A stretch of 64,000 bases of DNA, from the NCBI GenBank assembly GCA_964057225.1, contig OZ059894.1, forward strand, positions 3,410,001 to 3,474,000, written 5' to 3'. The position numbers and the translations under genes are program-made. This document shows positions 4,277 through 63,321 of the stretch, one piece after another. Each line of letters starts with the position of its first letter. Within the stretch, counting starts at the first letter, position 1. This DNA comes from Auanema rhodensis (Eukaryota > Animalia > Nematoda). The notes under the pieces are model-generated. The model did not search any database and had not been told where the DNA came from. It worked only from the letters and a program-made list of their open reading frames with translations.

Positions 4277-6989
<2,713 letters not shown>

Positions 6990-7234
6990 AAGGAAAACCT
7001 TGACAAGGAAAACCTTGAGAACTCCACGAGTATTTTCATAGATGAGTCGAGAGATACGCTTTACTCCACCACGACGAGCAAGACGACGGATAGCAGGCTT
7101 GTTTATACCTTGGATGTTATCACGGAGAACCTTACGATGGCGTTTGGCTTCTCCCTTTCCAAGACCTTTTCCTCCTTTAACACGTCCAGACATGCTGATC
7201 GAGCTGTGTGTTGAATAGTAACCCTAGCATTTAC

Positions 7235-7269
7235 CTTATATACTAGTGCTGTAGAGGTCACCGCGCAAA
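7235..7269 (-). promoter_or_regulatory. Putative H4 promoter (TTTGCGCG motif plus TATATAAG), present in all nine cassettes
   Basis: Minus strand has TATATAAG ending about 41 nt upstream of the H4 ATG, and TTTGCGCG 19 nt further upstream. Confidence 0.65.
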
Positions 7270-7629
7270 AACCCATTGTAATCGCCACCAAGCATATTGG
7301 CGCTTAATTTTGCTGCTCAATTCTAAAAATGTATTTTTAAATTTCATATAAACGATAAGAATAACATAAACAACTGTTTATTTGCGAACAAACGTAGAAT
7401 AGAAGCATGTGAGGCATTAGATATGATAACTGTTGTTGTTATCAACATGAAAGCATAATTAATGAAATTCATAAAAAAAAATGAAGATGGATATGGAATA
7501 TCAAAGACAGGGATTCTCCTTTACATAACAACAAAACATATCATATCAATTAACATTACATAGCAAAAAAAGACAAGACAGACACAGTATTATATTATAA
7601 ATCATTATGAATACATCAAATTTAAGTGT

Positions 7630-7645
7630 GGCCCTGAAGAGGGCC
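7630..7645 (-). terminator. Histone mRNA 3' stem-loop of H3
   Basis: GGCCCT-CTTC-AGGGCC downstream of the H3 stop. Confidence 0.95.
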
Positions 7646-7671
7646 GTTGGGTTATGTAACGTTTCAAGTGC

Positions 7672-8175
<504 letters not shown>

Positions 8176-8558
8176 TCACTATTTTGGTATTTTGACTATA
8201 AATATATTAAATCGGATCATAGCTACATAAATAAAGTGTTACAGTAATAAGGACAAAAACTTAGTAACTGTGCGTTGATTGGAATGTAATAGTAAATTGT
8301 ATTAAAACATTCACTGTTCCATTTAAAAAATAATTGTCTTCACGTATTATATAGTAAAATTTTTAATTAGAATACACTTGACCAATTATGGATATTTCAA
8401 CATCATTATAGCAAACATCTTAAAATTAACTAAATGCACCACTTGACAAGAGTTACTCATCTCATAAGAATTACATCAATATTAAGAAGCTCAAAAAAAC
8501 TAACTATAACAACAACCGATCAACTGCCATCTGTTTCAAAAATGAAATATCAATCAAA

Positions 8559-8921
8559 ATTATTGAACACGCCAGTTTGTTATTATATTTATTTTTATAT
8601 TATTTTATATTATATTTGTTTATAAATATTAGGTCCTGCATGGAAATTCCTTTTGTTCACTAAAAAACACGGTACGCAATTCGGGCAACACATTGTCTGG
8701 AATAATGTTGAAGCTCCAGTTAATTTATGCAATTAAGTTATTTTGTTAAAAGTTAGCTTTACTTTCGTAATTCATTATTGAACACGCCAGTTTGTTATTA
8801 TATTTATTTTTATATTATTTTATATTATATTTGTTTATAAGTATTAGGTCCTGCATGGAAATTCCTTTTGTTCACTAAAAAACACGGTACGCAATTCGGG
8901 CAACACTTTTTTTTTTTTTTT
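8559..8921. repeat. 133-bp direct duplication (8559-8691 and 8774-8906) followed by T15
   Basis: Two copies 215 bp apart with one visible mismatch. Confidence 0.9.
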
Positions 8922-9131
8922 ACTTTTTTATTTGGATGTGACATTACTTCCTTTTTTTTATTTGTGATTTTTCGATCATCTATATTTTAGTTATTATTAT
9001 TTAAATATACACAATGTATATTTAAAACACTTTTGTAGCATCTTGTTATTATGATCATGCTCAAATGAGTTGTTGCAGGTTGACCTCCCTGGTCCTAGTA
9101 TATAATGAAGAAAATTCTTCACTTCATCTCC

Positions 9132-11915
9132 TGGTTTGCGCGCTAACTAACATACAGGTCAGCAAAGGGAGTGGCACAATAACAGTTCATTCGTCAGCGT
9201 AAGAATAACCATGCCACCCAAGACATCCGCCAAGGGAGCTGAAGAAACGGAGAGAAGAAGAAGAGAAATTCCTGAAAGTAAGTTTTTAAGTTTTTAATGT
9301 TTAAATAATTCAAATAATTTCGAGTTGAATCAAATGTGTTTATCTATATTTTAGTTATTATTATTTAAATAAACACAATTCTTATAGTAAAGCTTCTAAC
9401 CAGAGTTGGGAGAATGGGGGCGTGGTTTGCGCGCTAACTAACATATAGGTCAGCAAAGGAAGTTGTACAATAACAGTTGATTCGTCAGCGTAGGAATAAC
9501 CATGCCACCCAAGCCATCCGCCAAGGGAGCTGAAGAGAAAGGAGAGAAGAAGAAGAGAAATTCCTGAAAGTAAGTTTTTAAGTTTTTAATGTTTAAATAA
9601 TTCAAATAATTTCAAGTTGAATCAAATGTCTGTATCTATATTTTAGTTATTATTATTTAAATATACACAATTCTTATAGTAAAGCTTCTAACCAGAGTTG
9701 GGAGAATGGAAGCGTGGTTTGCGTGCTAACTAACATATAGGTCAGCAAAGGGAGTTGTACAATAACAGTTGATACGTCAGCGTAGGAATAACCATGCCAC
9801 CCAAGCCATCCGCCAAGGGAGCTGAAGAAGAGAAATTCCAGAAAGTAAGTTTATATCAATAGTTTTCATGTAAAACAGCCTTTTATGAGGAAATTTAAAG
9901 TTTTTAATTTTTAAATAATTCAAATAATTTCAAGTTGAATCAAATGTCTTTATGTATATTTTAGTATATTATTATTCAAGTATACACAATTCTTATAGTA
10001 AAGCTTCTAACCAGAGTTGGGAGAATGGGGGCGTGGTTTGCGCGCTAACTAACGTATAGGTCAGCAAAGGGAGTTGTACAATAACAGTTGATTCGTCAGC
10101 GTAGGAATAACCATGCCACCCAAGCCATCCGCCAAGGGAGCTGAAGAGAAAGGAGAGAAGAAGAAGAGAAATTCCTGAAAGTGAGTTTTCAAGTTTTTAA
10201 TGTTTAAATAATTCAAATAATTTCAAGTTGAATCAAATGTCTTTATCTATATTTTAGTTATTATTATTCAAATATACACAATTCTTATAGTAAAGCTTCT
10301 AACCAGAGTTGGGAGAATGGGGGCGTGGTTTGCGCGCTAACTATCATATAGGTCAGCAAAGGGAGTTGTACAATAACAGTTGATTCGTCAGCGTAGGAAT
10401 AACCATGCCACCCAAGCCATCCGCCAAGGGAGCTGAAGAAGAGAAATTCCAGAAAGTAAGTTTATATCAATAGTTTTCATGTAAAACAGCCTTTTATGAG
10501 GAAATTTAAAGTTTTTAATGTTTAAATAATTCAAATAATTTCAAGTTGAATCAAATGTCTTTATCTATATTTTAGTATATTATTATTTAAATATACACAA
10601 TTCTTATAGTAAAGCTTCTAACCAGAGTTGGGAGAATGGGGGCGTGGTTTTCGCACTAACTAACATATAGGTCAGCAAAGGGAGTTGTACAATAACAGTT
10701 GATTCGTCAGCGTAGGAATAACCATGCCACCCAAGCCATCCGCCAAGGGAGCTGAAGAGAAAGGAGAGAAGAAGAAGAGAAATTCCTGAAAGTAAGTTTT
10801 TAAGTTTTTAATGTTTAAATAATTCAAATAATTTCAAGTTGAATCAAATGTCTGTATCTATATTTTAGTTATTATTATTTAAATATACACAATTCTTATA
10901 GTAAAGCTTCTAACCAGAGTTGGGAGAATGGAAGCGTGGTTTGCGTGCTAACTAACATATAGGTCAGCAAAGGGAGTTGTACAATAACAGTTGATACGTC
11001 AGCGTAGGAATAACCATGCCACCCAAGCCATCCGCCAAGGGAGCTGAAGAAGAGAAATTCCAGAAAGTAAGTTTATATCAATAGTTTTCATGTAAAACAG
11101 CCTTTTATGAGGAAATTTAAAGTTTTTAATTTTTAAATAATTCAAATAATTTCAAGTTGAATCAAATGTCTTTATGTATATTTTAGTATATTATTATTCA
11201 AGTATACACAATTCTTATAGTAAAGCTTCTAACCAGAGTTGGGAGAATGGGGGCGTGGTTTGCGCGCTAACTAACGTATAGGTCAGCAAAGGGAGTTGTA
11301 CAATAACAGTTGATTCGTCAGCGTAGGAATAACCATGCCACCCAAGCCATCCGCCAAGGGAGCTGAAGAGAAAGGAGAGAAGAAGAAGAGAAATTCCTGA
11401 AAGTGAGTTTTCAAGTTTTTAATGTTTAAATAATTCAAATAATTTCAAGTTGAATCAAATGTCTTTATCTATATTTTAGTTATTATTATTCAAATATACA
11501 CAATTCTTATAGTAAAGCTTCTAACCAGAGTTGGGAGAATGGGGGCGTGGTTTGCGCGCTAACTATCATATAGGTCAGCAAAGGGAGTTGTACAATAACA
11601 GTTGATTCGTCAGCGTAGGAATAACCATGCCACCCAAGCCATCCGCCAAGGGAGCTGAAGAAAAGGAGAGAAGAAGAAGAGAAATTCCTGAAAGTAAGTT
11701 TTTAAGTTTTTAATGTTTAAATAATTCAAATAATTTCAAGTTGATTCAAATGTCTTTATCTATATCTTAGTTATTATTATTTAAATATACATAATTTTTG
11801 TAGTAAAGCTTCTAACCAGAGTTGGGAGAATGGGTAAGGATAAGCTTCTAACCAGAGTTGGGAGAATGGGTAAGGATAAGCTTCTAACCAGAGTTGGGAG
11901 AATGGGGGAGTGGTT
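9132..11915 (+). repeat. H2B-5'-derived satellite, 9 monomers of about 292/319 bp
   Basis: ATGCCACCCAAG(C/A)CATCCGCCAAGGGAGCT (MPPKP/TSAKGA) at 9211, 9502, 9794, 10113, 10405, 10724, 11016, 11335 and 11627. Confidence 0.92.
11806..11906. repeat. 36-bp mini tandem repeat (about 2.8 copies) at the right end of the cassette
   Basis: AAGCTTCTAACCAGAGTTGGGAGAATGGG(TAAGGAT) at 11806, 11842 and 11878. Confidence 0.92.
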
Positions 11916-14900
11916 TCGAATGCACTATACCACATTAAGAAACGCTCAATACAAGACTTAGTTATGATCGTTTGAAAAATGATGCATTACTGTATGTTGA
12001 GTTTCAATGTACACTCAACATTGCTTCCAAAAACATTTTGACAAAAATTTTCCCGGAAAATTTCAAAATAATTTCACGAAAAGTAGATGTTTTTAGATTT
12101 CTTTTCTCGAGGCGAAGATGATGGACAATGTTATTCAGCGAAAAAATAAACTCTTCAGGGTGAAAATCGAGGATATAAGTGTGAACCTATATCAGTTGAT
12201 ATCTCGGTGCATTCTTAAGCTAGCGCAAATCTGATAACACAGATCGACGCAGCTCAAACATCCACATCGAAAGCACTATACTTCATTAAGAAATGCTCAA
12301 TACAAAAATTAGTTATGATCGTTTGGAAAATGATGCATTACTGTATATTGAGTTTCAATGTACACTCAACATTGCTTTCAAAAACATTTTGACAAAAATT
12401 TTCCCGAAAAATTTCTAAATAATTTCACGAAAAGTAGATGTTTTTAGATTCCTTTTTTCAAGGCAAAGACGATGGACAATGTTATTCAACGAAAAAATTA
12501 ATTCTTCAGGGTGAAAATCGAGGATATAAGTGTGAACTTATATCAGTTGATATCTCGGTGCATTTTTAAGCTAGCGCAAATCTGATAACACAGATCGACG
12601 CAGCTTGAAAATCCGCATCGAATGCACTATACTACATTGAAAAACGCTTAATACAAAAATTAGTTATGATCGTTTGAAAAATGATGCATTACTGTATGTT
12701 GAGTTTCAATGTACACTCAACATTGCTTCCAAAAACATTTTGACAAAAATTTTCCCGGAAAATTTCAAAATAATTTCACGAAAAGTAGATGTTTTTAGAT
12801 TTCTTTTCTCGAGGCGAAGATGATGGACAATGTTATTCAGCGAAAAAATAAACTCTTCAGGGTGAAAATCGAGGATATAAGTGTGAACCTATATCAGTTG
12901 ATATCTCGGTGCATTCTTAAGCTAGCGCAAATCTGATAACACAGATCGACGCAGCTCAAACATCCACATCGAAAGCACTATACTTCATTAAGAAATGCTC
13001 AATACAAAAATTAGTTATGATCGTTTGGAAAATGATGCATTACTGTATATTGAGTTTCAATGTACACTCAACATTGCTTTCAAAAACATTTTGACAAAAA
13101 TTTTCCCGAAAAATTTCTAAATAATTTCACGAAAAGTAGATGTTTTTAGATTCCTTTTTTCAAGGCAAAGACGATGGACAATGTTATTCAACGAAAAAAT
13201 TAATTCTTCAGGGTGAAAATCGAGGATATAAGTGTGAACTTATATCAGTTGATATCTCGGTGCATTTTTAAGCTAGCGCAAATCTGATAACACAGATCGA
13301 CGCAGCTTGAAAATCCGCATCGAATGCACTATACTACATTGAAAAACGCTTAATACAAAAATTAGTTATGATCGTTTGAAAAATGATGCATTACTGTATG
13401 TTGAGTTTCAATGTACACTCAACATTGCTTCCAAAAACATTTTGACAAAAATTTTCCCGGAAAATTTCAAAATAATTTCACGAAAAGTAGATGTTTTTAG
13501 ATTTCTTTTCTCGAGGCGAAGATGATGGACAATGTTATTCAGCGAAAAAATAAACTCTTCAGGGTGAAAATCGAGGATATAAGTGTGAACCTATATCAGT
13601 TGATATCTCGGTGCATTCTTAAGCTAGCGCAAATCTGATAACACAGATCGACGCAGCTCAAACATCCACATCGAAAGCACTATACTTCATTAAGAAATGC
13701 TCAATACAAAAATTAGTTATGATCGTTTGGAAAATGATGCATTACTGTATATTGAGTTTCAATGTACACTCAACATTGCTTTCAAAAACATTTTGACAAA
13801 AATTTTCCCGAAAAATTTCTAAATAATTTCACGAAAAGTAGATGTTTTTAGATTCCTTTTTTCAAGGCAAAGACGATGGACAATGTTATTCAACGAAAAA
13901 ATTAATTCTTCAGGGTGAAAATCGAGGATATAAGTGTGAACTTATATCAGTTGATATCTCGGTGCATTTTTAAGCTAGCGCAAATCTGATAACACAGATC
14001 GACGCAGCTTGAAAATCCGCATCGAATGCACTATACTACATTGAAAAACGCTTAATACAAAAATTAGTTATGATCGTTTGAAAAATGATGCATTAGTGTA
14101 TGTTGAGTTTCCATGTACACTCAACATTGCTTCCAAAAACATTTTGACAAAAATTTTTTCGAAAAATTTCGAAATAATTTAGCAAAAAGTAGATGTTTTT
14201 AGATTCCTTTTTTCAAGGCAAAGACGATGGACAATGTTATTCAACGAAAAAATTAATTCTTCAGGGTGAAAATCGAGGATATAAGTGTGAACCGATATCA
14301 GTTGATATCTCGGTGCATTCTAAAGCTAGCGCAATTTTGATAACACAGATCGACGCAGCTCAAAAATCCGCATTGAATGCACTATACTACATTGAGAAAC
14401 GCTTAATACAAAAATTAGTTATGATCGTTTGAAAAATGATGCATTACTGTATGTTGAGTTTCAATGTACACTCAACATTGCTTTCAAAAACATTTTGACA
14501 AAAATTTTCCCGAAAAATTTCGAAATAATTTCACGAAAAGTAGATGTTTTTAGATTCCTTTTTTCAAGGCGAAGACGATGGACAATGTTATTCAGCGAAA
14601 AAATTAACTCTTCAGGGTGAAAATCGAGGATATAAGTGTGAACCGATATCAGTTGATATCTCGGTGCATTTTTAAGCTAGCGCAAATATGGTAACATAGA
14701 TCGACGCAGCTTAAAAATCCGCATCGAATGCACTATACTACATTGAGAAAAGCTTTATACAAAAATTAGTTATGATCGTTTGAAAAATGATGCATTACTG
14801 TATGTTGAGTTTCCATGTACACTCAACATTGCTTCCAAAAACATTTTGACAAAAATTTTCCCGGAAAATTTCAAAATAATTTCACGAAAAGTAGATGTTT

Positions 14901-15783
14901 TTAGATTTCTTTTTTCGAGGCGAAGATGATGGACAATGTTATTCAGCGAAAAAATTAGTTCTTCAGGGTGAAAATCGAGGATATAAGTGTGAACTTATAT
15001 CAGTTGATATCTCGGTGCATTTTTAAGCTAGCGCAAATCTGATAACACAGATCTACGCAGCTTAAAAATCCGCATCGAATGCACTATACTACATTGAGAA
15101 ACGCTTAATATAAAAATTAGTTATGATCGTTTGAAAAATGATGCATTAGTGTATGTTGAGTTTCCATGTACACTCAACATTGCTTCCAAAAACATTTTGA
15201 CAAAAATTTTTTTCGAAAAATTTCAAATTAGTTTAGCAAAAAGTAGATGTTTTTAGATTCCTTTTTTCAAGGCAAAAACGATGGACAATGTTATTCAACG
15301 AAAAAAGTAAATCTTCAGGGTGAAAATCGAGGATACAAGTGTGAACATATATCAGTTGATTTCTCGGTGCATTTTTAAGCTAGCGCAAATCTGATAATAC
15401 AGATCGACGCAGCTTAAAAATCCGCATTGAATGCACTATACTACATTGAGAAAAGCTTAATACAAAAATTAGTTATGATCGTTTGAAAAATGATGCATTA
15501 CTGTATGTTGAGTTTCCATGTACACTCAACATTGCTTCCAAAAACATTTTGACAAAAATTTTCCCGAAAAATTTCTGGATAATTTCACAAAAAGTAGATG
15601 TTTTTAGATTCCTTTTTTCAAGGCGAAGACGACGGACAATGTTATTCAACGTAAAAATTAGTTTTTTAGGGTGAAAATCGAGGATATAGGTGTGAACTTA
15701 TATCAGTTGATATCTTGTTGCATTTTTAAGCTACCGCAAATCTGATAACACAGATCGACGCAGCTTAAAAATCCGCATCGAAT
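11916..15783. repeat. Sat351 array, about 11 monomers, with a 702-bp dimer higher-order repeat in the left part
   Basis: Tandem monomers with alternating variants. Confidence 0.97.
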
Positions 15784-16464: not shown

Positions 16465-19174
<2,710 letters not shown>

Positions 19175-19856: not shown

Positions 19857-23137
<3,281 letters not shown>

Positions 23138-23585: not shown

Positions 23586-29678
<6,093 letters not shown>

Positions 29679-30126: not shown

Positions 30127-36570
<6,444 letters not shown>

Positions 36571-37018: not shown

Positions 37019-37522
<504 letters not shown>

Positions 37523-38478: not shown

Positions 38479-41400
38479 TGGTTTGCGCGCTAACTAACAT
38501 ACAGGTCAGCAAAGGGAGTGGCACAATAACAGTTCATTCGTCAGCGTAAGAATAACCATGCCACCCAAGACATCCGCCAAGGGAGCTGAAGAAACGGAGA
38601 GAAGAAGAAGAGAAATTCCTGAAAGTAAGTTTTTAAGTTTTTAATGTTTAAATAATTCAAATAATTTCGAGTTGAATCAAATGTGTTTATCTATATTTTA
38701 GTTATTATTATTTAAATAAACACAATTCTTATAGTAAAGCTTCTAACCAGAGTTGGGAGAATGGGGGCGTGGTTTGCGCGCTAACTAACATATAGGTCAG
38801 CAAAGGAAGTTGTACAATAACAGTTGATTCGTCAGCGTAGGAATAACCATGCCACCCAAGCCATCCGCCAAGGGAGCTGAAGAGAAAGGAGAGAAGAAGA
38901 AGAGAAATTCCTGAAAGTAAGTTTTTAAGTTTTTAATGTTTAAATAATTCAAATAATTTCAAGTTGAATCAAATGTCTGTATCTATATTTTAGTTATTAT
39001 TATTTAAATATACACAATTCTTATAGTAAAGCTTCTAACCAGAGTTGGGAGAATGGAAGCGTGGTTTGCGTGCTAACTAACATATAGGTCAGCAAAGGGA
39101 GTTGTACAATAACAGTTGATACGTCAGCGTAGGAATAACCATGCCACCCAAGCCATCCGCCAAGGGAGCTGAAGAAGAGAAATTCCAGAAAGTAAGTTTT
39201 TAAGTTTTTAATGTTTAAATAATTCAAATAATTTCGAGTTGAATCAAATGTGTTTATCTATATTTTAGTTATTATTATTTAAATAAACACAATTCTTATA
39301 GTAAAGCTTCTAACCAGAGTTGGGAGAATGGGGGCGTGGTTTGCGCGCTAACTAACATATAGGTCAGCAAAGGAAGTTGTACAATAACAGTTGATTCGTC
39401 AGCGTAGGAATAACCATGCCACCCAAGCCATCCGCCAAGGGAGCTGAAGAGAAAGGAGAGAAGAAGAAGAGAAATTCCTGAAAGTAAGTTTTTAAGTTTT
39501 TAATGTTTAAATAATTCAAATAATTTCAAGTTGAATCAAATGTCTGTATCTATATTTTAGTTATTATTATTTAAATATACACAATTCTTATAGTAAAGCT
39601 TCTAACCAGAGTTGGGAGAATGGAAGCGTGGTTTGCGTGCTAACTAACATATAGGTCAGCAAAGGGAGTTGTACAATAACAGTTGATACGTCAGCGTAGG
39701 AATAACCATGCCACCCAAGCCATCCGCCAAGGGAGCTGAAGAAGAGAAATTCCAGAAAGTAAGTTTATATCAATAGTTTTCATGTAAAACAGCCTTTTAT
39801 GAGGAAATTTAAAGTTTTTAATTTTTAAATAATTCAAATAATTTCAAGTTGAATCAAATGTCTTTATGTATATTTTAGTATATTATTATTCAAGTATACA
39901 CAATTCTTATAGTAAAGCTTCTAACCTGAGTTGGGAGAATGGGGGCGTGGTTTGCGCGCTAACTAACGTATAGGTCAGCAAAGGGAGTTGTACAATAACA
40001 GTTGATTCGTCAGCGTAGGAATAACCATGCCACCCAAGCCATCCGCCAAGGGAGCTGAAGAGAAAGGAGAGAAGAAGAAGAGAAATTCCTGAAAGTGAGT
40101 TTTCAAGTTTTTAATGTTTAAATAATTCAAATAATTTCAAGTTGAATCAAATGTCTTTATCTATATTTTAGTTATTATTATTCAAATATACACAATTCTT
40201 ATAGTAAAGCTTCTAACCAGAGTTGGGAGAATGGGGGCGTGGTTTGCGCGCTAACTATCATATAGGTCAGCAAAGGGAGTTGTACAATAACAGTTGATTC
40301 GTCAGCGTAGGAATAACCATGCCACCCAAGCCATCCGCCAAGGGAGCTGAAGAAGAGAAATTCCAGAAAGTAAGTTTATATCAATAGTTTTCATGTAAAA
40401 CAGCCTTTTATGAGGAAATTTAAAGTTTTTAATGTTTAAATAATTCAAATAATTTCAAGTTGAATCAAATGTCTTTATCTATATTTTAGTATATTATTAT
40501 TTAAATATACACAATTCTTATAGTAAAGCTTCTAACCAGAGTTGGGAGAATGGGGGCGTGGTTTTCGCACTAACTAACATATAGGTCAGCAAAGGGAGTT
40601 GTACAATAACAGTTGATTCGTCAGCGTAGGAATAACCATGCCACCCAAGCCATCCGCCAAGGGAGCTGAAGAGAAAGGAGAGAAGAAGAAGAGAAATTCC
40701 TGAAAGTAAGTTTTTAAGTTTTTAATGTTTAAATAATTCAAATAATTTCAAGTTGAATCAAATGTCTGTATCTATATTTTAGTTATTATTATTTAAATAT
40801 ACACAATTCTTATAGTAAAGCTTCTAACCAGAGTTGGGAGAATGGAAGCGTGGTTTGCGTGCTAACTAACATATAGGTCAGCAAAGGGAGTTGTACAATA
40901 ACAGTTGATACGTCAGCGTAGGAATAACCATGCCACCCAAGCCATCCGCCAAGGGAGCTGAAGAAGAGAAATTCCAGAAAGTAAGTTTATATCAATAGTT
41001 TTCATGTAAAACAGCCTTTTATGAGGAAATTTAAAGTTTTTAATTTTTAAATAATTCAAATAATTTCAAGTTGAATCAAATGTCTTTATGTATATTTTAG
41101 TATATTATTATTCAAGTATACACAATTCTTATAGTAAAGCTTCTAACCAGAGTTGGGAGAATGGGGGCGTGGTTTGCGCGCTAACTAACGTATAGGTCAG
41201 CAAAGGGAGTTGTACAATAACAGTTGATTCGTCAGCGTAGGAATAACCATGCCACCCAAGCCATCCGCCAAGGGAGCTGAAGAGAAAGGAGAGAAGAAGA
41301 AGAGAAATTCCTGAAAGTGAGTTTTCAAGTTTTTAATGTTTAAATAATTCAAATAATTTCAAGTTGAATCAAATGTCTTTATCTATATTTTAGTTATTAT

Positions 41401-41829
41401 TATTCAAATATACACAATTCTTATAGTAAAGCTTCTAACCAGAGTTGGGAGAATGGGGGCGTGGTTTGCGCGCTAACTATCATATAGGTCAGCAAAGGGA
41501 GTTGTACAATAACAGTTGATTCGTCAGCGTAGGAATAACCATGCCACCCAAGCCATCCGCCAAGGGAGCTGAAGAAAAGGAGAGAAGAAGAAGAGAAATT
41601 CCTGAAAGTAAGTTTTTAAGTTTTTAATGTTTAAATAATTCAAATAATTTCAAGTTGATTCAAATGTCTTTATCTATATCTTAGTTATTATTATTTAAAT
41701 ATACATAATTTTTGTAGTAAAGCTTCTAACCAGAGTTGGGAGAATGGGTAAGGATAAGCTTCTAACCAGAGTTGGGAGAATGGGTAAGGATAAGCTTCTA
41801 ACCAGAGTTGGGAGAATGGGGGAGTGGTT
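38479..41829 (+). repeat. H2B-5'-derived satellite, 11 monomers (one is a 275-bp hybrid), ending in the 36-bp repeat at 41720-41820
   Basis: MPPKP/TSAKGA-coding motif repeated from 38558 to 41541. Confidence 0.92.
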
Positions 41830-47081: not shown

Positions 47082-47585
<504 letters not shown>

Positions 47586-48541: not shown

Positions 48542-51500
48542 TGGTTTGCGCGCTAACTAACATACAGGTCAGCAAAGGGAGTGGCACAATAACAGTTCAT
48601 TCGTCAGCGTAAGAATAACCATGCCACCCAAGACATCCGCCAAGGGAGCTGAAGAAACGGAGAGAAGAAGAAGAGAAATTCCTGAAAGTAAGTTTTTAAG
48701 TTTTTAATGTTTAAATAATTCAAATAATTTCGAGTTGAATCAAATGTGTTTATCTATATTTTAGTTATTATTATTTAAATAAACACAATTCTTATAGTAA
48801 AGCTTCTAACCAGAGTTGGGAGAATGGGGGCGTGGTTTGCGCGCTAACTAACATATAGGTCAGCAAAGGAAGTTGTACAATAACAGTTGATTCGTCAGCG
48901 TAGGAATAACCATGCCACCCAAGCCATCCGCCAAGGGAGCTGAAGACAAAGGAGAGAAGAAGAAGAGAAATTCCTGAAAGTAAGTTTTTAATGTTTAAAT
49001 AATTCAAATAATTTCAAGTTGAATCAAATGTCTTTATCTATATTTTAGTTATTATTATTTAAATATACACAATTCTTATAGTAAAGCTTCTAACCAGAGT
49101 TGGGAGAATGGGGGCGTGGTTTGCGTGCTAACTAACATATAGGTCAGCAAAGGGAATTGTACAATAACAGTTGATACGTCAGCGTAGGAATAACCATGCC
49201 ATCCAAGCCATCCGCCAAGGGAGCTGAAAAAGAGAAATTCCAGAAAGTAAGTTTATATCAATAGTTTTCATGTAAAACAGCCTTTTATGAGGAAATTTAA
49301 AGTTTTTAATGTTTAAATAATTCAAATAATTTCAAGTTGAATCAAATGTCTTTATCTATATTTTAGTATATTATTATTTAAATATACACAATTCTTATAG
49401 TAAAGCTTCTAACCAGAGTTGGGAGAATGGGGGCGTGGTTTTCGCACTAACTAACATATAGGTCAGCAAAGGGAGTTGTACAATAACAGTTGATTCGTCA
49501 GCGTAGGAATAACCATGCCACCCAAGCCATCCGCCAAGGGAGCTGAAGAGAAAGGAGAGAAGAAGAAGAGAAATTCCTGAAAGTAAGTTTTTAAGTTTTT
49601 AATGTTTAAATAATTCAAATAATTTCAAGTTGAATCAAATGTCTGTATCTATATTTTAGTTATTATTATTTAAATATACACAATTCTTATAGTAAAGCTT
49701 CTAACCAGAGTTGGGAGAATGGAAGCGTGGTTTGCGTGCTAACTAACATATAGGTCAGCAAAGGGAGTTGTACAATAACAGTTGATACGTCAGCGTAGGA
49801 ATAACCATGCCACCCAAGCCATCCGCCAAGGGAGCTGAAGAAGAGAAATTCCAGAAAGTAAGTTTATATCAATAGTTTTCATGTAAAACAGCCTTTTATG
49901 AGGAAATTTAAAGTTTTTAATTTTTAAATAATTCAAATAATTTCAAGTTGAATCAAATGTCTTTATGTATATTTTAGTATATTATTATTCAAGTATACAC
50001 AATTCTTATAGTAAAGCTTCTAACCAGAGTTGGGAGAATGGGGGCGTGGTTTGCGCGCTAACTATCATATAGGTCAGCAAAGGGAGTTGTACAATAACAG
50101 TTGATTCGTCAGCGTAGGAATAACCATGCCACCCAAGCCATCCGCCAAGGGAGCTGAAGAAGAGAAATTCCAGAAAGTAAGTTTATATCAATAGTTTTCA
50201 TGTAAAACAGCCTTTTATGAGGAAATTTAAAGTTTTTAATGTTTAAATAATTCAAATAATTTCAAGTTGAATCAAATGTCTTTATCTATATTTTAGTATA
50301 TTATTATTTAAATATACACAATTCTTATAGTAAAGCTTCTAACCAGAGTTGGGAGAATGGGGGCGTGGTTTTCGCACTAACTAACATATAGGTCAGCAAA
50401 GGGAGTTGTACAATAACAGTTGATTCGTCAGCGTAGGAATAACCATGCCACCCAAGCCATCCGCCAAGGGAGCTGAAGAGAAAGGAGAGAAGAAGAAGAG
50501 AAATTCCTGAAAGTAAGTTTTTAAGTTTTTAATGTTTAAATAATTCAAATAATTTCAAGTTGAATCAAATGTCTGTATCTATATTTTAGTTATTATTATT
50601 TAAATATACACAATTCTTATAGTAAAGCTTCTAACCAGAGTTGGGAGAATGGAAGCGTGGTTTGCGTGCTAACTAACATATAGGTCAGCAAAGGGAGTTG
50701 TACAATAACAGTTGATACGTCAGCGTAGGAATAACCATGCCACCCAAGCCATCCGCCAAGGGAGCTGAAGAAGAGAAATTCCAGAAAGTAAGTTTATATC
50801 AATAGTTTTCATGTAAAACAGCCTTTTATGAGGAAATTTAAAGTTTTTAATTTTTAAATAATTCAAATAATTTCAAGTTGAATCAAATGTCTTTATGTAT
50901 ATTTTAGTACATTATTATTCAAGTATACACAATTCTTATAGTAAAGCTTCTAACCAGAGTTGGGAGAATGGGGGCGTGGTTTGCGCGCTAACTAACGTAT
51001 AGGTCAGCAAAGGGAGTTGTACAATAACAGTTGATTCGTCAGCGTAGGAATAACCATGCCACCCAAGCCATCCGCCAAGGGAGCTGAAGAGAAAGGAGAG
51101 AAGAAGAAGAGAAATTTCTGAAAGTGAGTTTTCAAGTTTTTAATGTTTAAATAATTCAAATAATTTCAAGTTGAATCAAATGTCTTTATCTATATTTTAG
51201 TTATTATTATTCAAATATACACAATTCTTATAGTAAAGCTTCTAACCAGAGTTGGGAGAATGGGGGCGTGGTTTGCGCGCTAACTATCATATAGGTCAGC
51301 AAAGGGAGTTGTACAATAACAGTTGATTCGTCAGCGTAGGAATAACCATGCCACCCAAGCCATCCGCCAAGGGAGCTGAAAAAGAGAAATTCCAGAAAGT
51401 AAGTTTATATCAATAGTTTTCATGTAAAACAGCCTTTTATGAGGAAATTTAAAGTTTTTAATGTTTAAATAATTCAAATAATTTCAAGTTGAATCAAATG

Positions 51501-54500
51501 TCTTTATCTATATTTTAGTATATTATTATTTAAATATACACAATTCTTATAGTAAAGCTTCTAACCAGAGTTGGGAGAATGGGGGCGTGGTTTTCGCACT
51601 AACTAACATATAGGTCAGCAAAGGGAGTTGTACAATAACAGTTGATTCGTCAGCGTAGGAATAACCATGCCACCCAAGCCATCCGCCAAGGGAGCTGAAG
51701 AGAAAGGAGAGAAGAAGAAGAGAAATTCCTGAAAGTAAGTTTTTAAGTTTTTAATGTTTAAATAATTCAAATAATTTCAAGTTGAATCAAATGTCTGTAT
51801 CTATATTTTAGTTATTATTATTTAAATATACACAATTCTTATAGTAAAGCTTCTAACCAGAGTTGGGAGAATGGAAGCGTGGTTTGCGTGCTAACTAACA
51901 TATAGGTCAGCAAAGGGAGTTGTACAATAACAGTTGATACGTCAGCGTAGGAATAACCATGCCACCCAAGCCATCCGCCAAGGGAGCTGAAGAAGAGAAA
52001 TTCCAGAAAGTAAGTTTATATCAATAGTTTTCATGTAAAACAGCCTTTTATGAGGAAATTTAAAGTTTTTAATTTTTAAATAATTCAAATAATTTCAAGT
52101 TGAATCAAATGTCTTTATGTATATTTTAGTATATTATTATTCAAGTATACACAATTCTTATAGTAAAGCTTCTAACCAGAGTTGGGAGAATGGGGGCGTG
52201 GTTTGCGCGCTAACTATCATATAGGTCAGCAAAGGGAGTTGTACAATAACAGTTGATTCGTCAGCGTAGGAATAACCATGCCACCCAAGCCATCCGCCAA
52301 GGGAGCTGAAGAAGAGAAATTCCAGAAAGTAAGTTTATATCAATAGTTTTCATGTAAAACAGCCTTTTATGAGGAAATTTAAAGTTTTTAATGTTTAAAT
52401 AATTCAAATAATTTCAAGTTGAATCAAATGTCTTTATCTATATTTTAGTATATTATTATTTAAATATACACAATTCTTATAGTAAAGCTTCTAACCAGAG
52501 TTGGGAGAATGGGGGCGTGGTTTTCGCACTAACTAACATATAGGTCAGCAAAGGGAGTTGTACAATAACAGTTGATTCGTCAGCGTAGGAATAACCATGC
52601 CACCCAAGCCATCCGCCAAGGGAGCTGAAGAGAAAGGAGAGAAGAAGAAGAGAAATTCCTGAAAGTAAGTTTTTAAGTTTTTAATGTTTAAATAATTCAA
52701 ATAATTTCAAGTTGAATCAAATGTCTGTATCTATATTTTAGTTATTATTATTTAAATATACACAATTCTTATAGTAAAGCTTCTAACCAGAGTTGGGAGA
52801 ATGGAAGCGTGGTTTGCGTGCTAACTAACATATAGGTCAGCAAAGGGAGTTGTACAATAACAGTTGATACGTCAGCGTAGGAATAACCATGCCACCCAAG
52901 CCATCCGCCAAGGGAGCTGAAGAAGAGAAATTCCAGAAAGTAAGTTTATATCAATAGTTTTCATGTAAAACAGCCTTTTATGAGGAAATTTAAAGTTTTT
53001 AATTTTTAAATAATTCAAATAATTTCAAGTTGAATCAAATGTCTTTATGTATATTTTAGTATATTATTATTCAAGTATACACAATTCTTATAGTAAAGCT
53101 TCTAACCAGAGTTGGGAGAATGGGGGCGTGGTTTGCGCGCTAACTAACGTATAGGTCAGCAAAGGGAGTTGTACAATAACAGTTGATTCGTCAGCGTAGG
53201 AATAACCATGCCACCCAAGCCATCCGCCAAGGGAGCTGAAGAGAAAGGAGAGAAGAAGAAGAGAAATTCCTGAAAGTGAGTTTTCAAGTTTTTAATGTTT
53301 AAATAATTCAAATAATTTCAAGTTGAATCAAATGTCTTTATCTATATTTTAGTTATTATTATTCAAATATACACAATTCTTATAGTAAAGCTTCTAACCA
53401 GAGTTGGGAGAATGGGGGCGTGGTTTGCGCGCTAACTAACGTATAGGTCAGCAAAGGGAGTTGTACAATAACAGTTGATTCGTCAGCGTAGGAATAACCA
53501 TGCCACCCAAGCCATCCGCCAAGGGAGCTGAAGAGAAAGGAGAGAAGAAGAAGAGAAATTCCTGAAAGTGAGTTTTCAAGTTTTTAATGTTTAAATAATT
53601 CAAATAATTTCAAGTTGAATCAAATGTCTTTATCTATATTTTAGTATATTATTATTTAAATATACACAATTCTTATAGTAAAGCTTCTAACCAGAGTTGG
53701 GAGAATGGGGGCGTGGTTTTCGCACTAACTAACATATAGGTCAGCAAAGGGAGTTGTACAATAACAGTTGATTCGTCAGCGTAGGAATAACCATGCCACC
53801 CAAGCCATCCGCCAAGGGAGCTGAAGAGAAAGGAGAGAAGAAGAAGAGAAATTCCTGAAAGTAAGTTTTTAAGTTTTTAATGTTTAAATAATTCAAATAA
53901 TTTCAAGTTGAATCAAATGTCTGTATCTATATTTTAGTTATTATTATTTAAATATACACAATTCTTATAGTAAAGCTTCTAACCAGAGTTGGGAGAATGG
54001 AAGCGTGGTTTGCGTGCTAACTAACATATAGGTCAGCAAAGGGAGTTGTACAATAACAGTTGATACGTCAGCGTAGGAATAACCATGCCACCCAAGCCAT
54101 CCGCCAAGGGAGCTGAAGAAGAGAAATTCCAGAAAGTAAGTATATATCAATAGTTTTCATGTAAAACAGCCTTTTATGAGGAAATTTAAAGTTTTTAATT
54201 TTTAAATAATTCAAATAATTTCAAGTTGAATCAAATGTCTTTATGTATATTTTAGTATATTATTATTCAAGTATACACAATTCTTATAGTAAAGCTTCTA
54301 ACCAGAGTTGGGAGAATGGGGGCGTGGTTTGCGCGCTAACTATCATATAGGTCAGCAAAGGGAGTTGTACAATAACAGTTGATTCGTCAGCGTAGGAATA
54401 ACCATGCCACCCAAGCCATCCGCCAAGGGAGCTGAAGAAGAGAAATTCCAGAAAGTAAGTTTATATCAATAGTTTTCATGTAAAACAGCCTTTTATGAGG

Positions 54501-57500
54501 AAATTTAAAGTTTTTAATGTTTAAATAATTCAAATAATTTCAAGTTGAATCAAATGTCTTTATCTATATTTTAGTATATTATTATTTAAATATACACAAT
54601 TCTTATAGTAAAGCTTCTAACCAGAGTTGGGAGAATGGGGGCGTGGTTTTCGCACTAACTAACATATAGGTCAGCAAAGGGAGTTGTACAATAACAGTTG
54701 ATTCGTCAGCGTAGGAATAACCATGCCACCCAAGCCATCCGCCAAGGGAGCTGAAGAGAAAGGAGAGAAGAAGAAGAGAAATTCCTGAAAGTAAGTTTTT
54801 AAGTTTTTAATGTTTAAATAATTCAAATAATTTCAAGTTGAATCAAATGTCTGTATCTATATTTTAGTTATTATTATTTAAATATACACAATTCTTATAG
54901 TAAAGCTTCTAACCAGAGTTGGGAGAATGGAAGCGTGGTTTGCGTGCTAACTAACATATAGGTCAGCAAAGGGAGTTGTACAATAACAGTTGATACGTCA
55001 GCGTAGGAATAACCATGCCACCCAAGCCATCCGCCAAGGGAGCTGAAGAAGAGAAATTCCAGAAAGTAAGTTTATATCAATAGTTTTCATGTAAAACAGC
55101 CTTTTATGAGGAAATTTAAAGTTTTTAATTTTTAAATAATTCAAATAATTTCAAGTTGAATCAAATGTCTTTATGTATATTTTAGTATATTATTATTCAA
55201 GTATACACAATTCTTATAGTAAAGCTTCTAACCAGAGTTGGGAGAATGGGGGCGTGGTTTGCGCGCTAACTATCATATAGGTCAGCAAAGGGAGTTGTAC
55301 AATAACAGTTGATTCGTCAGCGTAGGAATAACCATGCCACCCAAGCCATCCGCCAAGGGAGCTGAAGAAGAGAAATTCCAGAAAGTAAGTTTATATCAAT
55401 AGTTTTCATGTAAAACAGCCTTTTATGAGGAAATTTAAAGTTTTTAATGTTTAAATAATTCAAATAATTTCAAGTTGAATCAAATGTCTTTATCTATATT
55501 TTAGTATATTATTATTTAAATATACACAATTCTTATAGTAAAGCTTCTAACCAGAGTTGGGAGAATGGGGGCGTGGTTTTCGCACTAACTAACATATAGG
55601 TCAGCAAAGGGAGTTGTACAATAACAGTTGATTCGTCAGCGTAGGAATAACCATGCCACCCAAGCCATCCGCCAAGGGAGCTGAAGAGAAAGGAGAGAAG
55701 AAGAAGAGAAATTCCTGAAAGTAAGTTTTTAAGTTTTTAATGTTTAAATAATTCAAATAATTTCAAGTTGAATCAAATGTCTGTATCTATATTTTAGTTA
55801 TTATTATTTAAATATACACAATTCTTATAGTAAAGCTTCTAACCAGAGTTGGGAGAATGGAAGCGTGGTTTGCGTGCTAACTAACATATAGGTCAGCAAA
55901 GGGAGTTGTACAATAACAGTTGATACGTCAGCGTAGGAATAACCATGCCACCCAAGCCATCCGCCAAGGGAGCTGAAGAAGAGAAATTCCAGAAAGTAAG
56001 TTTATATCAATAGTTTTCATGTAAAACAGCCTTTTATGAGGAAATTTAAAGTTTTTAATGTTTAAATAATTCAAATAATTTCAAGTTGAATCAAATGTCT
56101 TTATCTATATTTTAGTATATTATTATTTAAATATACACAATTCTTATAGTAAAGCTTCTAACCAGAGTTGGGAGAATGGGGGCGTGGTTTTCGCACTAAC
56201 TAACATATAGGTCAGCAAAGGGAGTTGTACAATAACAGTTGATTCGTCAGCGTAGGAATAACCATGCCACCCAAGCCATCCGCCAAGGGAGCTGAAGAGA
56301 AAGGAGAGAAGAAGAAGAGAAATTCCTGAAAGTAAGTTTTTAAGTTTTTAATGTTTAAATAATTCAAATAATTTCAAGTTGAATCAAATGTCTGTATCTA
56401 TATTTTAGTTATTATTATTTAAATATACACAATTCTTATAGTAAAGCTTCTAACCAGAGTTGGGAGAATGGAAGCGTGGTTTGCGTGCTAACTAACATAT
56501 AGGTCAGCAAAGGGAGTTGTACAATAACAGTTGATACGTCAGCGTAGGAATAACCATGCCACCCAAGCCATCCGCCAAGGGAGCTGAAGAAGAGAAATTC
56601 CAGAAAGTAAGTTTATATCAATAGTTTTCATGTAAAACAGCCTTTTATGAGGAAATTTAAAGTTTTTAATTTTTAAATAATTCAAATAATTTCAAGTTGA
56701 ATCAAATGTCTTTATGTATATTTTAGTATATTATTATTCAAGTATACACAATTCTTATAGTAAAGCTTCTAACCAGAGTTGGGAGAATGGGGGCGTGGTT
56801 TGCGCGCTAACTAACGTATAGGTCAGCAAAGGGAGTTGTACAATAACAGTTGATTCGTCAGCGTAGGAATAACCATGCCACCCAAGCCATCCGCCAAGGG
56901 AGCTGAAGAGAAAGGAGAGAAGAAGAAGAGAAATTCCTGAAAGTGAGTTTTCAAGTTTTTAATGTTTAAATAATTCAAATAATTTCAAGTTGAATCAAAT
57001 GTCTTTATCTATATTTTAGTTATTATTATTCAAATATACACAATTCTTATAGTAAAGCTTCTAACCAGAGTTGGGAGAATGGGGGCGTGGTTTGCGCGCT
57101 AACTATCATTTAGGTCAGCAAAGGGAGTTGTACAATAACAGTTGATTCGTCAGCGTAGGAATAACCATGCCACCCAAGCCATCCGCCAAGGGAGCTGAAG
57201 AGAAAGGAGAGAAGAAGAAGAGAAATTCCTGAAAGTGAGTTTTCAAGTTTTTAATGTTTAAATAATTCAAATAATTTCAAATTGAATCAAATGTCTTTAT
57301 CTATATTTTAGTTATTATTATTCAAATATACACAATTCTTATAGTAAAGCTTCTAACCAGAGTTGGGAGAATGGGGGCGTGGTTTGCGCGCTAACTATCA
57401 TATAGGTCAGCAAAGGGAGTTGTACAATAACAGTTGATTCGTCAGCGTAGGAATAACCATGCCACCCAAGCCATCCGCCAAGGGAGCTGAAGAAGAGAAA

Positions 57501-58969
57501 TTCCAGAAAGTAAGTTTATATCAATAGTTTTCATGTAAAACAGCCTTTTATGAGGAAATTTAAAGTTTTTAATGTTTAAATAATTCAAATAATTTCAAGT
57601 TGAATCAAATGTCTTTATCTATATTTTAGTATATTATTATTTAAATATACACAATTCTTATAGTAAAGCTTCTAACCAGAGTTGGGAGAATGGGGGCGTG
57701 GTTTTCGCACTAACTAACATATAGGTCAGCAAAGGGAGTTGTACAATAACAGTTGATTCGTCAGCGTAGGAATAACCATGCCACCCAAGCCATCCGCCAA
57801 GGGAGCTGAAGAGAAAGGAGAGAAGAAGAAGAGAAATTCCTGAAAGTAAGTTTTTAAGTTTTTAATGTTTAAATAATTCAAATAATTTCAAGTTGAATCA
57901 AATGTCTGTATCTATATTTTAGTTATTATTATTTAAATATACACAATTCTTATAGTAAAGCTTCTAACCAGAGTTGGGAGAATGGAAGCGTGGTTTGCGT
58001 GCTAACTAACATATAGGTCAGCAAAGGGAGTTGTACAATAACAGTTGATTCGTCAGCGTAGGAATAACCATGCCACCCAAGCCATCCGCCAAGGGAGCTG
58101 AAGAAGAGAAATTCCAGAAAGTAAGTTTATATCAATAGTTTTCATGTAAAACAGCCTTTTATGAGGAAATTTAAAGTTTTTAACTTTTAAATAATTCAAA
58201 TAATTTCAAGTTGAATCAAATGTCTTTATGTATATTTTAGTATATTATTATTCAAGTATACACAATTCTTATAGTAAAGCTTCTAACCAGAGTTGGGAGA
58301 ATGGGGGCGTGGTTTGCGCGCTAACTAACGTATAGGTCAGCAAAGGGAGTTGTACAATAACAGTTGATTCGTCAGCGTAGGAATAACCATGCCACCCAAG
58401 CCATCCGCCAAGGGAGCTGAAGAGAAAGGAGAGAAGAAGAAGAGAAATTCCTGAAAGTGAGTTTTCAAGTTTTTAATGTTTAAATAATTCAAATAATTTC
58501 AAGTTGAATCAAATGTCTTTATCTATATTTTAGTTATTATTATTCAAATATACACAATTCTTATAGTAAAGCTTCTAACCAGAGTTGGGAGAATGGGGGC
58601 GTGGTTTGCGCGCTAACTATCATATAGGTCAGCAAAGGGAGTTGTACAATAACAGTTGATTCGTCAGCGTAGGAATAACCATGCCACCCAAGCCATCCGC
58701 CAAGGGAGCTGAAGAAAAGGAGAGAAGAAGAAGAGAAATTCCTGAAAGTAAGTTTTTAAGTTTTTAATGTTTAAATAATTCAAATAATTTCAAGTTGATT
58801 CAAATGTCTTTATCTATATCTTAGTTATTATTATTTAAATATACATAATTTTTGTAGTAAAGCTTCTAACCAGAGTTGGGAGAATGGGTAAGGATAAGCT
58901 TCTAACCAGAGTTGGGAGAATGGGTAAGGATAAGCTTCTAACCAGAGTTGGGAGAATGGGGGAGTGGTT
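48542..58969 (+). repeat. Expanded H2B-5'-derived satellite, about 34 monomers, ending in the 36-bp repeat at 58860-58960
   Basis: MPPKP/TSAKGA-coding motif repeated from 48621 to 58681 at mostly 292/319-bp spacing. Confidence 0.93.

Positions 58970-62817: not shown

Positions 62818-63321
<504 letters not shown>

Follow-up and report, generated by a model that had tools for sequence, protein, structure and literature searches.

Tandem arrays of an apparent histone H2B promoter and broken start region in Auanema DNA, probably a passenger satellite

Results

A 64-kb stretch of DNA from a nematode of the genus Auanema (hereafter the window, by which we mean the whole stretch analysed) carries three arrays of a tandem repeat whose monomer, as judged by homology, stems from a nematode histone H2B gene, of which it comprises the promoter, the leader and a damaged 5′ stretch of the coding sequence. 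These arrays probably represent a young gene-derived satellite without selected function, neutral and expanding by unequal exchange, and the repeat is most likely a passenger without a job. An earlier reading of the bare letters (the original prediction) had proposed that the satellite goes back to the promoter and start module of H2B. This idea has held, and with stronger support than was first given for it, since the homology spans the upstream element, the leader, codons 1–10 or 1–12 and codons 23–32 of H2B.

As reference we used three partial H2B genes of the congener Auanema sp. JU1783 (loci L015–L017), in place of the host's own H2B. When the 100 nt upstream of the monomer ATG were compared with two JU1783 H2B genes, the z scores were 6.8 and 5.5, and 0 of 2000 dinucleotide shuffles did as well in either comparison. 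The upstream regions of the H3 and H4 genes of the window, used as a control against the same JU1783 targets, gave z scores of at most 2.2. Comparison of the monomer with the H2B upstream regions of two other loci gave 0.5 and 2.1. The similarity to H2B upstream sequence, on which the original prediction had made the origin depend, is therefore found beyond the 30-nt start motif, and the proposed origin stands. The upstream pieces common to the monomer and the JU1783 H2B genes are a GC-box/TGCGCGC element and a 12-nt block of the leader. The first of them occurs at three JU1783 histone loci (L015, 408–431; L016, 60–79; L018, 9834–9852), including an intron-containing H2A/H2B pair, and the monomer copy (9413–9434) is also related to the element upstream of the H3 gene of the window. 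From these occurrences, the GC-box/TGCGCGC element is a candidate genus-level histone promoter motif. JU1783 also has a cluster of intron-containing H4, H2B and H2A variant genes (L018, 8792–10467), which lies apart from its intronless H2B genes.

The homology continues in the coding part. The GA-rich stretch behind codon 10 had been described as non-histone; it is actually H2B codons 23–32 standing behind an internal deletion, and the score of its match to JU1783 (Table 1) is reached by 0 of 5000 shuffles (GEKKKRNS* in the monomer, GDKKKRKSRK in JU1783). A first exon of a non-histone gene whose product begins with MPPK can be ruled out, as two separate coding blocks and the promoter all match H2B. 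A degenerate search with the first ten codons in metagenome contigs retrieved four loci, all of them true H2B genes, and the peptide MPPKPSAKGA was present in 79 of the best 120 protein matches to one retrieved H2B, mostly of nematode origin where the organism was named. The exact 29-nt H2B start had no match in the metagenome contigs, a leader-plus-ATG search of viral contigs had none either and was uninformative, and protein-cluster look-ups yielded no further Auanema H2B genes.

Two main types of monomer, of 292 and 319 bp, can be distinguished. In the 292 type the reading frame has been regained and codon 31 reads TGA; the early stop reported by the original prediction is thus present in this type, although it arises as an AGA-to-TGA change within H2B codon 31. 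The 319 type keeps AGA at codon 31, has lost 17 nt between short direct repeats and has gained 43–44 nt further on. The typical monomer promoter had been given as GGGGCGTGG-TTTGCGCG followed by a TATA box. This pair exists, but it is intact in only 25 of the 54 monomers, and the TATA motif reads TATAGG instead of TATAAA. Other details were as described: the two quoted peptides are present in 23 and 19 copies, TTTGCGCG stands ahead of the H4 TATA box in nine copies on the minus strand, and a GC box together with CATATA lies ahead of H3. Codons 1–10 and the ATG context are intact in 50 of the 54 monomers. A functional H2B gene is absent from the arrays, in which codons 13–22 and everything after codon 32 are missing and no 3′ stem-loop occurs.

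The first monomer of each array is the one nearest to the parent gene (Table 1) and likely displays the ancestral lesion, that is, a 1-nt insertion and a 29-nt deletion relative to H2B. Part of the AT-rich block that completes the monomer can be traced as well: 38 bp of it are identical to positions 8978–9015 of the spacer that precedes array 1, and in the last monomer this match carries on to 9038. The other 60–105 bp have no clear source. The simplest reading of these matches would be that the unit arose by tandem duplication of the H2B 5′ region together with its own upstream DNA.

Directly after codon 32, all 54 monomers carry a donor-like GT(A/G)AGT (GTAAGT in 44, GTGAGT in 10). Neither this motif nor the cassette around the arrays had been noticed in the original prediction. 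Motifs in the 292 type delimit candidate introns of 77, 110 or 126 nt, the donor motif arising also in 19% of shuffled monomers. If the array is read exon by exon, stops appear within 30 codons after every candidate acceptor except one weak AAG site, and the peptides have no common end and finish in unrelated frames. There is no Rfam match in the array at E ≤ 5, which rules out a unit like a spliced-leader (SL) RNA or a small nuclear RNA (snRNA). A hairpin precursor is likewise ruled out, because the monomer has no stable fold, none better than that of shuffles (z +0.67), and no long inverted repeat.

We counted 54 ATG-bearing monomers in the three arrays, all on the plus strand and in agreement with the roughly 54 copies first reported; copy numbers are given as assembled. 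Monomers are 275–319 bp long, mostly spaced by 292 and 319 bp, and fall into 19 distinct sequences with a total of 16.6 kb. The arrays have the properties of a satellite, namely highly similar head-to-tail monomers in multi-kb arrays, higher-order structure and a recombinant monomer. All three share their first monomer and their last monomer, and the same five bases mark both ends, so that each array comprises a whole number of units. In array 1, the tail consists of a 36-bp unit (2.8 copies) and a terminal partial promoter whose last 5 nt, TGGTT, are also the first 5 nt of the array. Because the near-identical cassettes in which the arrays reside (see below) differ in monomer count, the copy number must have changed after duplication of the cassette, and unequal exchange or slippage would be the natural mechanism for such a change.

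How is variation distributed along the monomer? The promoter element is its most polymorphic part, with five shared variants in 22 nt and a pi of 0.086, compared with 0.032 in the AT-rich block and 0.001 in codons 1–10. In 29 of the 54 copies it carries damage, caused by alleles unlike the JU1783 form. Shared variable sites make up 5 of its 22 positions against 4 of 123 in the rest of the H2B-derived part (Fisher p = 0.004, post hoc). A pattern in which the promoter element varies most, and does so away from the JU1783 form, speaks against its upkeep as a promoter battery or as a sink for factors. The arrays terminate in the 36-bp repeat and the 351-bp satellite described below, and the nearest intact gene, H3, points away from them.

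Table 1. Coordinates of the H2B-derived arrays, of the parts of a typical monomer and of the surrounding cassette
Feature	Position	Strand	Remarks
Array 1	9132..11915	+	9 monomers, types e f b c d a b c g
Array 2	38479..41829	+	11 monomers, one of them a 275-bp recombinant of the 292 and 319 types
Array 3	48542..58969	+	34 monomers; higher-order 4-mer (a b c d, 1222 bp) and 3-mer (a b d)
First monomer, nearest to parent	9211..9278	+	codons 1–10, extra G, codons 11–12, 29-nt deletion, codons 23–32; no GC box
Histone-promoter element (GC box and TGCGCGC), typical monomer	9413..9434	+	homologous to element upstream of Auanema sp. JU1783 H2B genes
Weak TATA-like motif CATATAGG	9442..9449	+	JU1783 gene in L015 has CATATAAC
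H2B leader	9450..9501	+	9477–9488 identical to JU1783 leader in L015 (12/12 nt)
H2B codons 1–10 (MPPKPSAKGA)	9502..9531	+	29/30 nt vs JU1783 H2B
H2B codons 23–32, behind internal deletion	9541..9570	+	27/30 nt vs JU1783; codon 31 TGA (292 type) or AGA (319 type)
Donor-like GTAAGT at junction of codon 32 and AT-rich part	9570..9575	+	sequence motif
AT-rich part	9576..9679	+	9634–9671 identical to spacer 8978–9015; candidate acceptors end at 9646, 9679 and 9695
Left target-site duplication TCGAAT	6984..6989	+	single copy at unoccupied satellite sites
H4 promoter and codons 1–63	6990..7293	-	5 amino-acid changes; cut off at satellite with 15-bp duplication; 9 copies in window
Intact intronless histone H3 gene	7606..8082	-	3′ stem-loop present
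Spacer between H3 and array	8083..9131		H3 promoter, 136-bp duplication, source-like copy of monomer AT-rich block (8978–9038)
H4-promoter paralog with canonical TATATAA	9064..9105	+	score 40, 0/1000 shuffles; own gene absent
Right target-site duplication TCGAAT	11916..11921	+	
Host 351-bp satellite block	11916..15783	+	one of 10 blocks in window

Nearly the whole window is made of a few modules, with nine copies of a histone-derived cassette set into the 351-bp satellite. In its full form (6990–11915), the cassette contains, in this order, the H4 promoter with codons 1–63 (minus strand), H3 (minus strand), a 1049-bp spacer, the H2B array (plus strand) and the 36-bp unit. Three cassettes are complete, one runs past the end of the window, and in five everything from H3 codon 36 on is deleted and the remainder joins the satellite again through a TT microhomology; the copies are 99.7–100% identical. 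The hexamer TCGAAT is present at nine of nine left and three of three right cassette junctions and is single at empty satellite sites, which identifies the cassette as an insertion that duplicated 6 bp of its target. A transposon would also make such a duplication, but we rejected this candidate as the ends lie inside the H4 coding sequence and inside the H2B promoter. The cassette contains no coding sequence for a transposase or reverse transcriptase, no poly(A) tail and no element-like ends, and its only recognisable open reading frames are histone-derived.

The H3 gene of the cassette has a 3′ stem-loop that matches Rfam RF00032 with an E value of 1.9e-5, although the score falls short of the gathering threshold. 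The gene has identical copies at 37019–37429, 47082–47492 and 62818–63228, and the exact H3 sequence is matched in other animals. Within the same cassette, H3 (7672–8082), whose promoter and stem-loop are intact, shows no amino-acid change in 136 codons compared with five in 63 codons for H4 (7005–7193; Fisher p = 0.003), so either H3 is under selection or it has recently been converted or added. In addition, five H3 frames without their tail, opened by satellite sequence, are found on the minus strand (4277–4621, 16465–16809, 19857–20201, 23586–23930 and 30127–30471).

The H4-promoter paralog at 9064–9105 stands 26 nt ahead of the first monomer and is directed into the array. Either H2A or another H4 might be the gene that once belonged to it. 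We considered, and ruled out, a divergent H2A promoter for the minus strand of 9060–9105, the H4-promoter match being on the plus strand only. Small tandem duplications occur elsewhere in the cassette, of 15 bp (6990–7018, two copies, absent from three cassette copies), 136 bp (8559–8909, two copies) and 36 bp (11806–11906, 2.8 copies), which suggests repeated slippage or end-joining repair. By geometry alone, any read-through that leaves an array rightward would meet, within the 351-bp satellite (for instance at 11916–15783), the leftward read-through of the next H4 fragment, which is unterminated, and the two would overlap there. The spacer also contains a single CTGTTTCA (8529–8536, plus strand), which we take to be the upstream core motif of C. 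elegans piRNAs and which probably occurs here by chance.

Discussion

How could a piece of a histone gene become a satellite? In the model that we propose, a slice of a replication-dependent histone cluster, comprising the 5′ part of H4, H3, a spacer and the 5′ part of H2B, would have been inserted into the 351-bp satellite, leaving the 6-bp target duplication that is seen at the junctions and possibly entering by capture at a double-strand break. Before or after this event, the H2B part would have acquired the 1-nt insertion, the 29-nt deletion and the truncation after codon 32 that are apparent from comparison with the congener H2B, and the truncated H2B would have been joined to AT-rich DNA from its own upstream spacer. 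The resulting unit of about 300 bp would then have been tandemly duplicated, would have split into the 292 and 319 types and would have expanded, presumably through unequal exchange or slippage, to the 3-mer and 4-mer higher-order patterns that are observed. Finally, the whole cassette would have been recopied together with the host satellite, giving the nine copies in the window of which five are deleted from H3 onward, and the number of monomers would then have drifted in each array (9, 11 and 34). Surviving promoters and an accidental splice donor may yield leaky spliced non-coding RNA. The arrays probably lie in a germline-limited Auanema block, where selection against repeats is weak. We favour a neutral satellite because the cassettes are 99.7–100% identical, their monomer counts differ, and the first and last monomers are constant.

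Several observations weigh against neutrality. The leader and codons 1–10 vary less than the AT-rich block (2 of 81 against 14 of 107 shared sites; p = 0.015, post hoc), the difference being weaker when the whole H2B-derived part is compared with this block (p = 0.08). The donor-like motif has been kept in 54 of 54 monomers and its sole variant still fits the consensus. An unchanged H3 beside the array, as opposed to the changed H4, may mean that part of the cassette is under selection, and the orphan H4-type promoter at 9064–9105 is a candidate driver of read-through into the array. The leader and codons 1–10 could owe their low variation either to selection or to gene conversion by intact H2B genes; if intact histone genes converted the cassette in this way, the unchanged H3 would be accounted for as well. 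As for the donor, we take it as accidental because the intron-containing nematode H2B genes that we fetched have their first intron near codon 45. Taken together, the signs of function in the sequence are weak.

What, then, might such arrays do if they had a function? One answer, which we regard as unlikely, is that they are a co-opted source of non-coding RNA, the promoters of the monomers or of 9064–9105 driving a spliced multi-exon RNA into 22G-RNA pathways. Its targets would be H2B mRNA, through some 110 nt of shared leader and coding sequence, or the 351-bp satellite, with the help of opposite-strand read-through from the H4 fragments. Histone mRNAs of C. elegans can enter the HRDE-1 22G-RNA silencing pathway (PMC7038979), so that a small-RNA role for the arrays is conceivable, and it would be in line with a nearly invariant leader with codons 1–10, a donor that is kept, a canonical TATATAA promoter aimed into the array and H4 fragments that lack a 3′ end and face the opposite way. 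However, the promoter element is decaying, the donor motif is common enough in shuffled monomers to arise by accident, the array is very young and local, no hairpin is found in the monomer, and only 10 of 360 eliminated genes exceed 3 transcripts per million in the A. rhodense paper (10.64898/2026.08.27.747507). Somewhat more doubtful is the idea that the satellite is a germline-limited regulator which programmed DNA elimination removes from the soma, and whose spliced transcripts would give 22G-RNAs against H2B mRNA or the host satellite or whose promoter copies would titrate factors. A slightly lower probability still goes to arrays that act as DNA, whether as a sink or nucleation site for the transcription factors of histone genes or as an enhancer battery for the neighbouring H3, in the manner of ribosomal DNA (rDNA) spacer repeats. 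Here one can point to the 25 copies in 64 kb that retain the promoter element common to Auanema histone genes, and to the position of each array, 1.05 kb from the start of an intact H3 without amino-acid change. Against this stands the low conservation of the element, the lowest in the monomer. Moreover, cassettes that are otherwise identical differ four-fold in copy number, the array has been lost from five cassettes, and any effect would be limited to the germline and the earliest embryo if the block is eliminated at the 12-cell stage. Two roles suggested by the original prediction thus lack support in the sequence: a tandem promoter battery has no intact gene downstream of the arrays and would have to work from the most variable part of the monomer, and a sink for transcription factors finds no backing in a promoter element so polymorphic, with variants that move away from the JU1783 form.

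Coding roles appear even less probable. It is very improbable that the monomer represents a genuine exon 1, with the beginning of intron 1, from an H2B variant gene with introns, in spite of the consensus donor that directly follows the AA of codon 32 in every copy and of the existence of intron-containing histone variants in Auanema (L018). In the intron-containing nematode H2B genes that were fetched (L008, L011, L014 and L018), the first intron follows a Gln at about codon 45, the best-matching JU1783 genes (L015–L017) are intronless at codon 32, the AT-rich part matches the local upstream spacer and no downstream H2B exon exists in the window. The least probable reading of all makes the monomers micro-genes for basic peptides of 20–28 residues resembling the H2B tail. 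The ATG context and codons 1–10 would be suited to it, being intact in nearly all monomers (50/54), as would the common 292 type, in frame with H2B codons 23–30; however, frameshifts and the nonsense change produce at least three unrelated peptide endings, and the array has no stem-loop or other 3′ signal. The source of micropeptides that had been suggested earlier is thus not supported by the sequence, given that the peptides end in unrelated frames.

The arrays clearly record the passage from gene fragment to satellite. Satellites are rarely seen at birth in such a way that parent, intermediates and subsequent drift in copy number can all be read; here each step can be assigned to exact nucleotide positions, and the repeat grew from something other than an rDNA spacer or a transposon, the usual seeds. 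Should the block be germline-limited, it would be a tangible example of what has been proposed in print, namely that repeats find shelter in eliminated DNA and accumulate there. With the arrays one could also readily ask whether repeats that carry promoters are transcribed within eliminated DNA, or yield small RNAs directed at an essential family of genes. For now, the H2B satellite is a well-resolved curiosity.

A close setting is that of A. rhodense, in which about 61% of the genome is eliminated, mostly as tandem repeats of 167–504 nt, and in which the eliminated blocks have been proposed as places of weak selection where repeats accumulate (10.64898/2026.08.27.747507). The same preprint describes gene-bearing repeats (5S, tRNA and U2) and an eliminated cluster of divergent H3, and eliminated blocks have about one-eighth of the usual depth in its reads (29× versus 236×) (10.64898/2026.08.27.747507). 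Our monomer falls within the reported size range, and the genome is probably the same. On the other hand, the main text of the preprint mentions neither H2B nor the H2B-derived repeat, and its four fluorescence in situ hybridization (FISH) probes have no match in the window (best 9–11 mismatches).

Satellites are known to arise from multigene repeats, such as the rDNA intergenic spacer, and from transposable elements (PMC5615363). As in those cases, part of a repeated gene unit has here been turned into head-to-tail copies, which show higher-order structure and bear marks of unequal exchange. The seed differs, since it is the RNA polymerase II (Pol II) promoter and the 5′ coding part of a protein-coding gene. 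Limited literature searches, with most subscription papers outside reach, found no published satellite derived from histone H2B. Promoters and enhancer subrepeats in the rDNA spacer, of which Drosophila and Xenopus provide further examples, are a second parallel. In the Daphnia intergenic spacer (IGS) A repeats, too, a promoter-bearing segment is tandemly repeated and its number varies by unequal crossing over (PMC3036644). Whereas rDNA spacer repeats lie upstream of the intact gene that they serve, the H2B arrays run into satellite, with a broken coding fragment and a decaying promoter element.

Histone genes displaced from their clusters are themselves no novelty: histone orphons have been described, and in the newt histone clusters are embedded in satellite DNA. 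Read-through into satellite DNA from the promoters of upstream genes has been reported (PMC2114352). Our window resembles the newt in having displaced histone genes inside a satellite, with promoters able to read into it, but in the newt intact clusters lie within an unrelated satellite, whereas here the histone fragment itself is the repeat unit.

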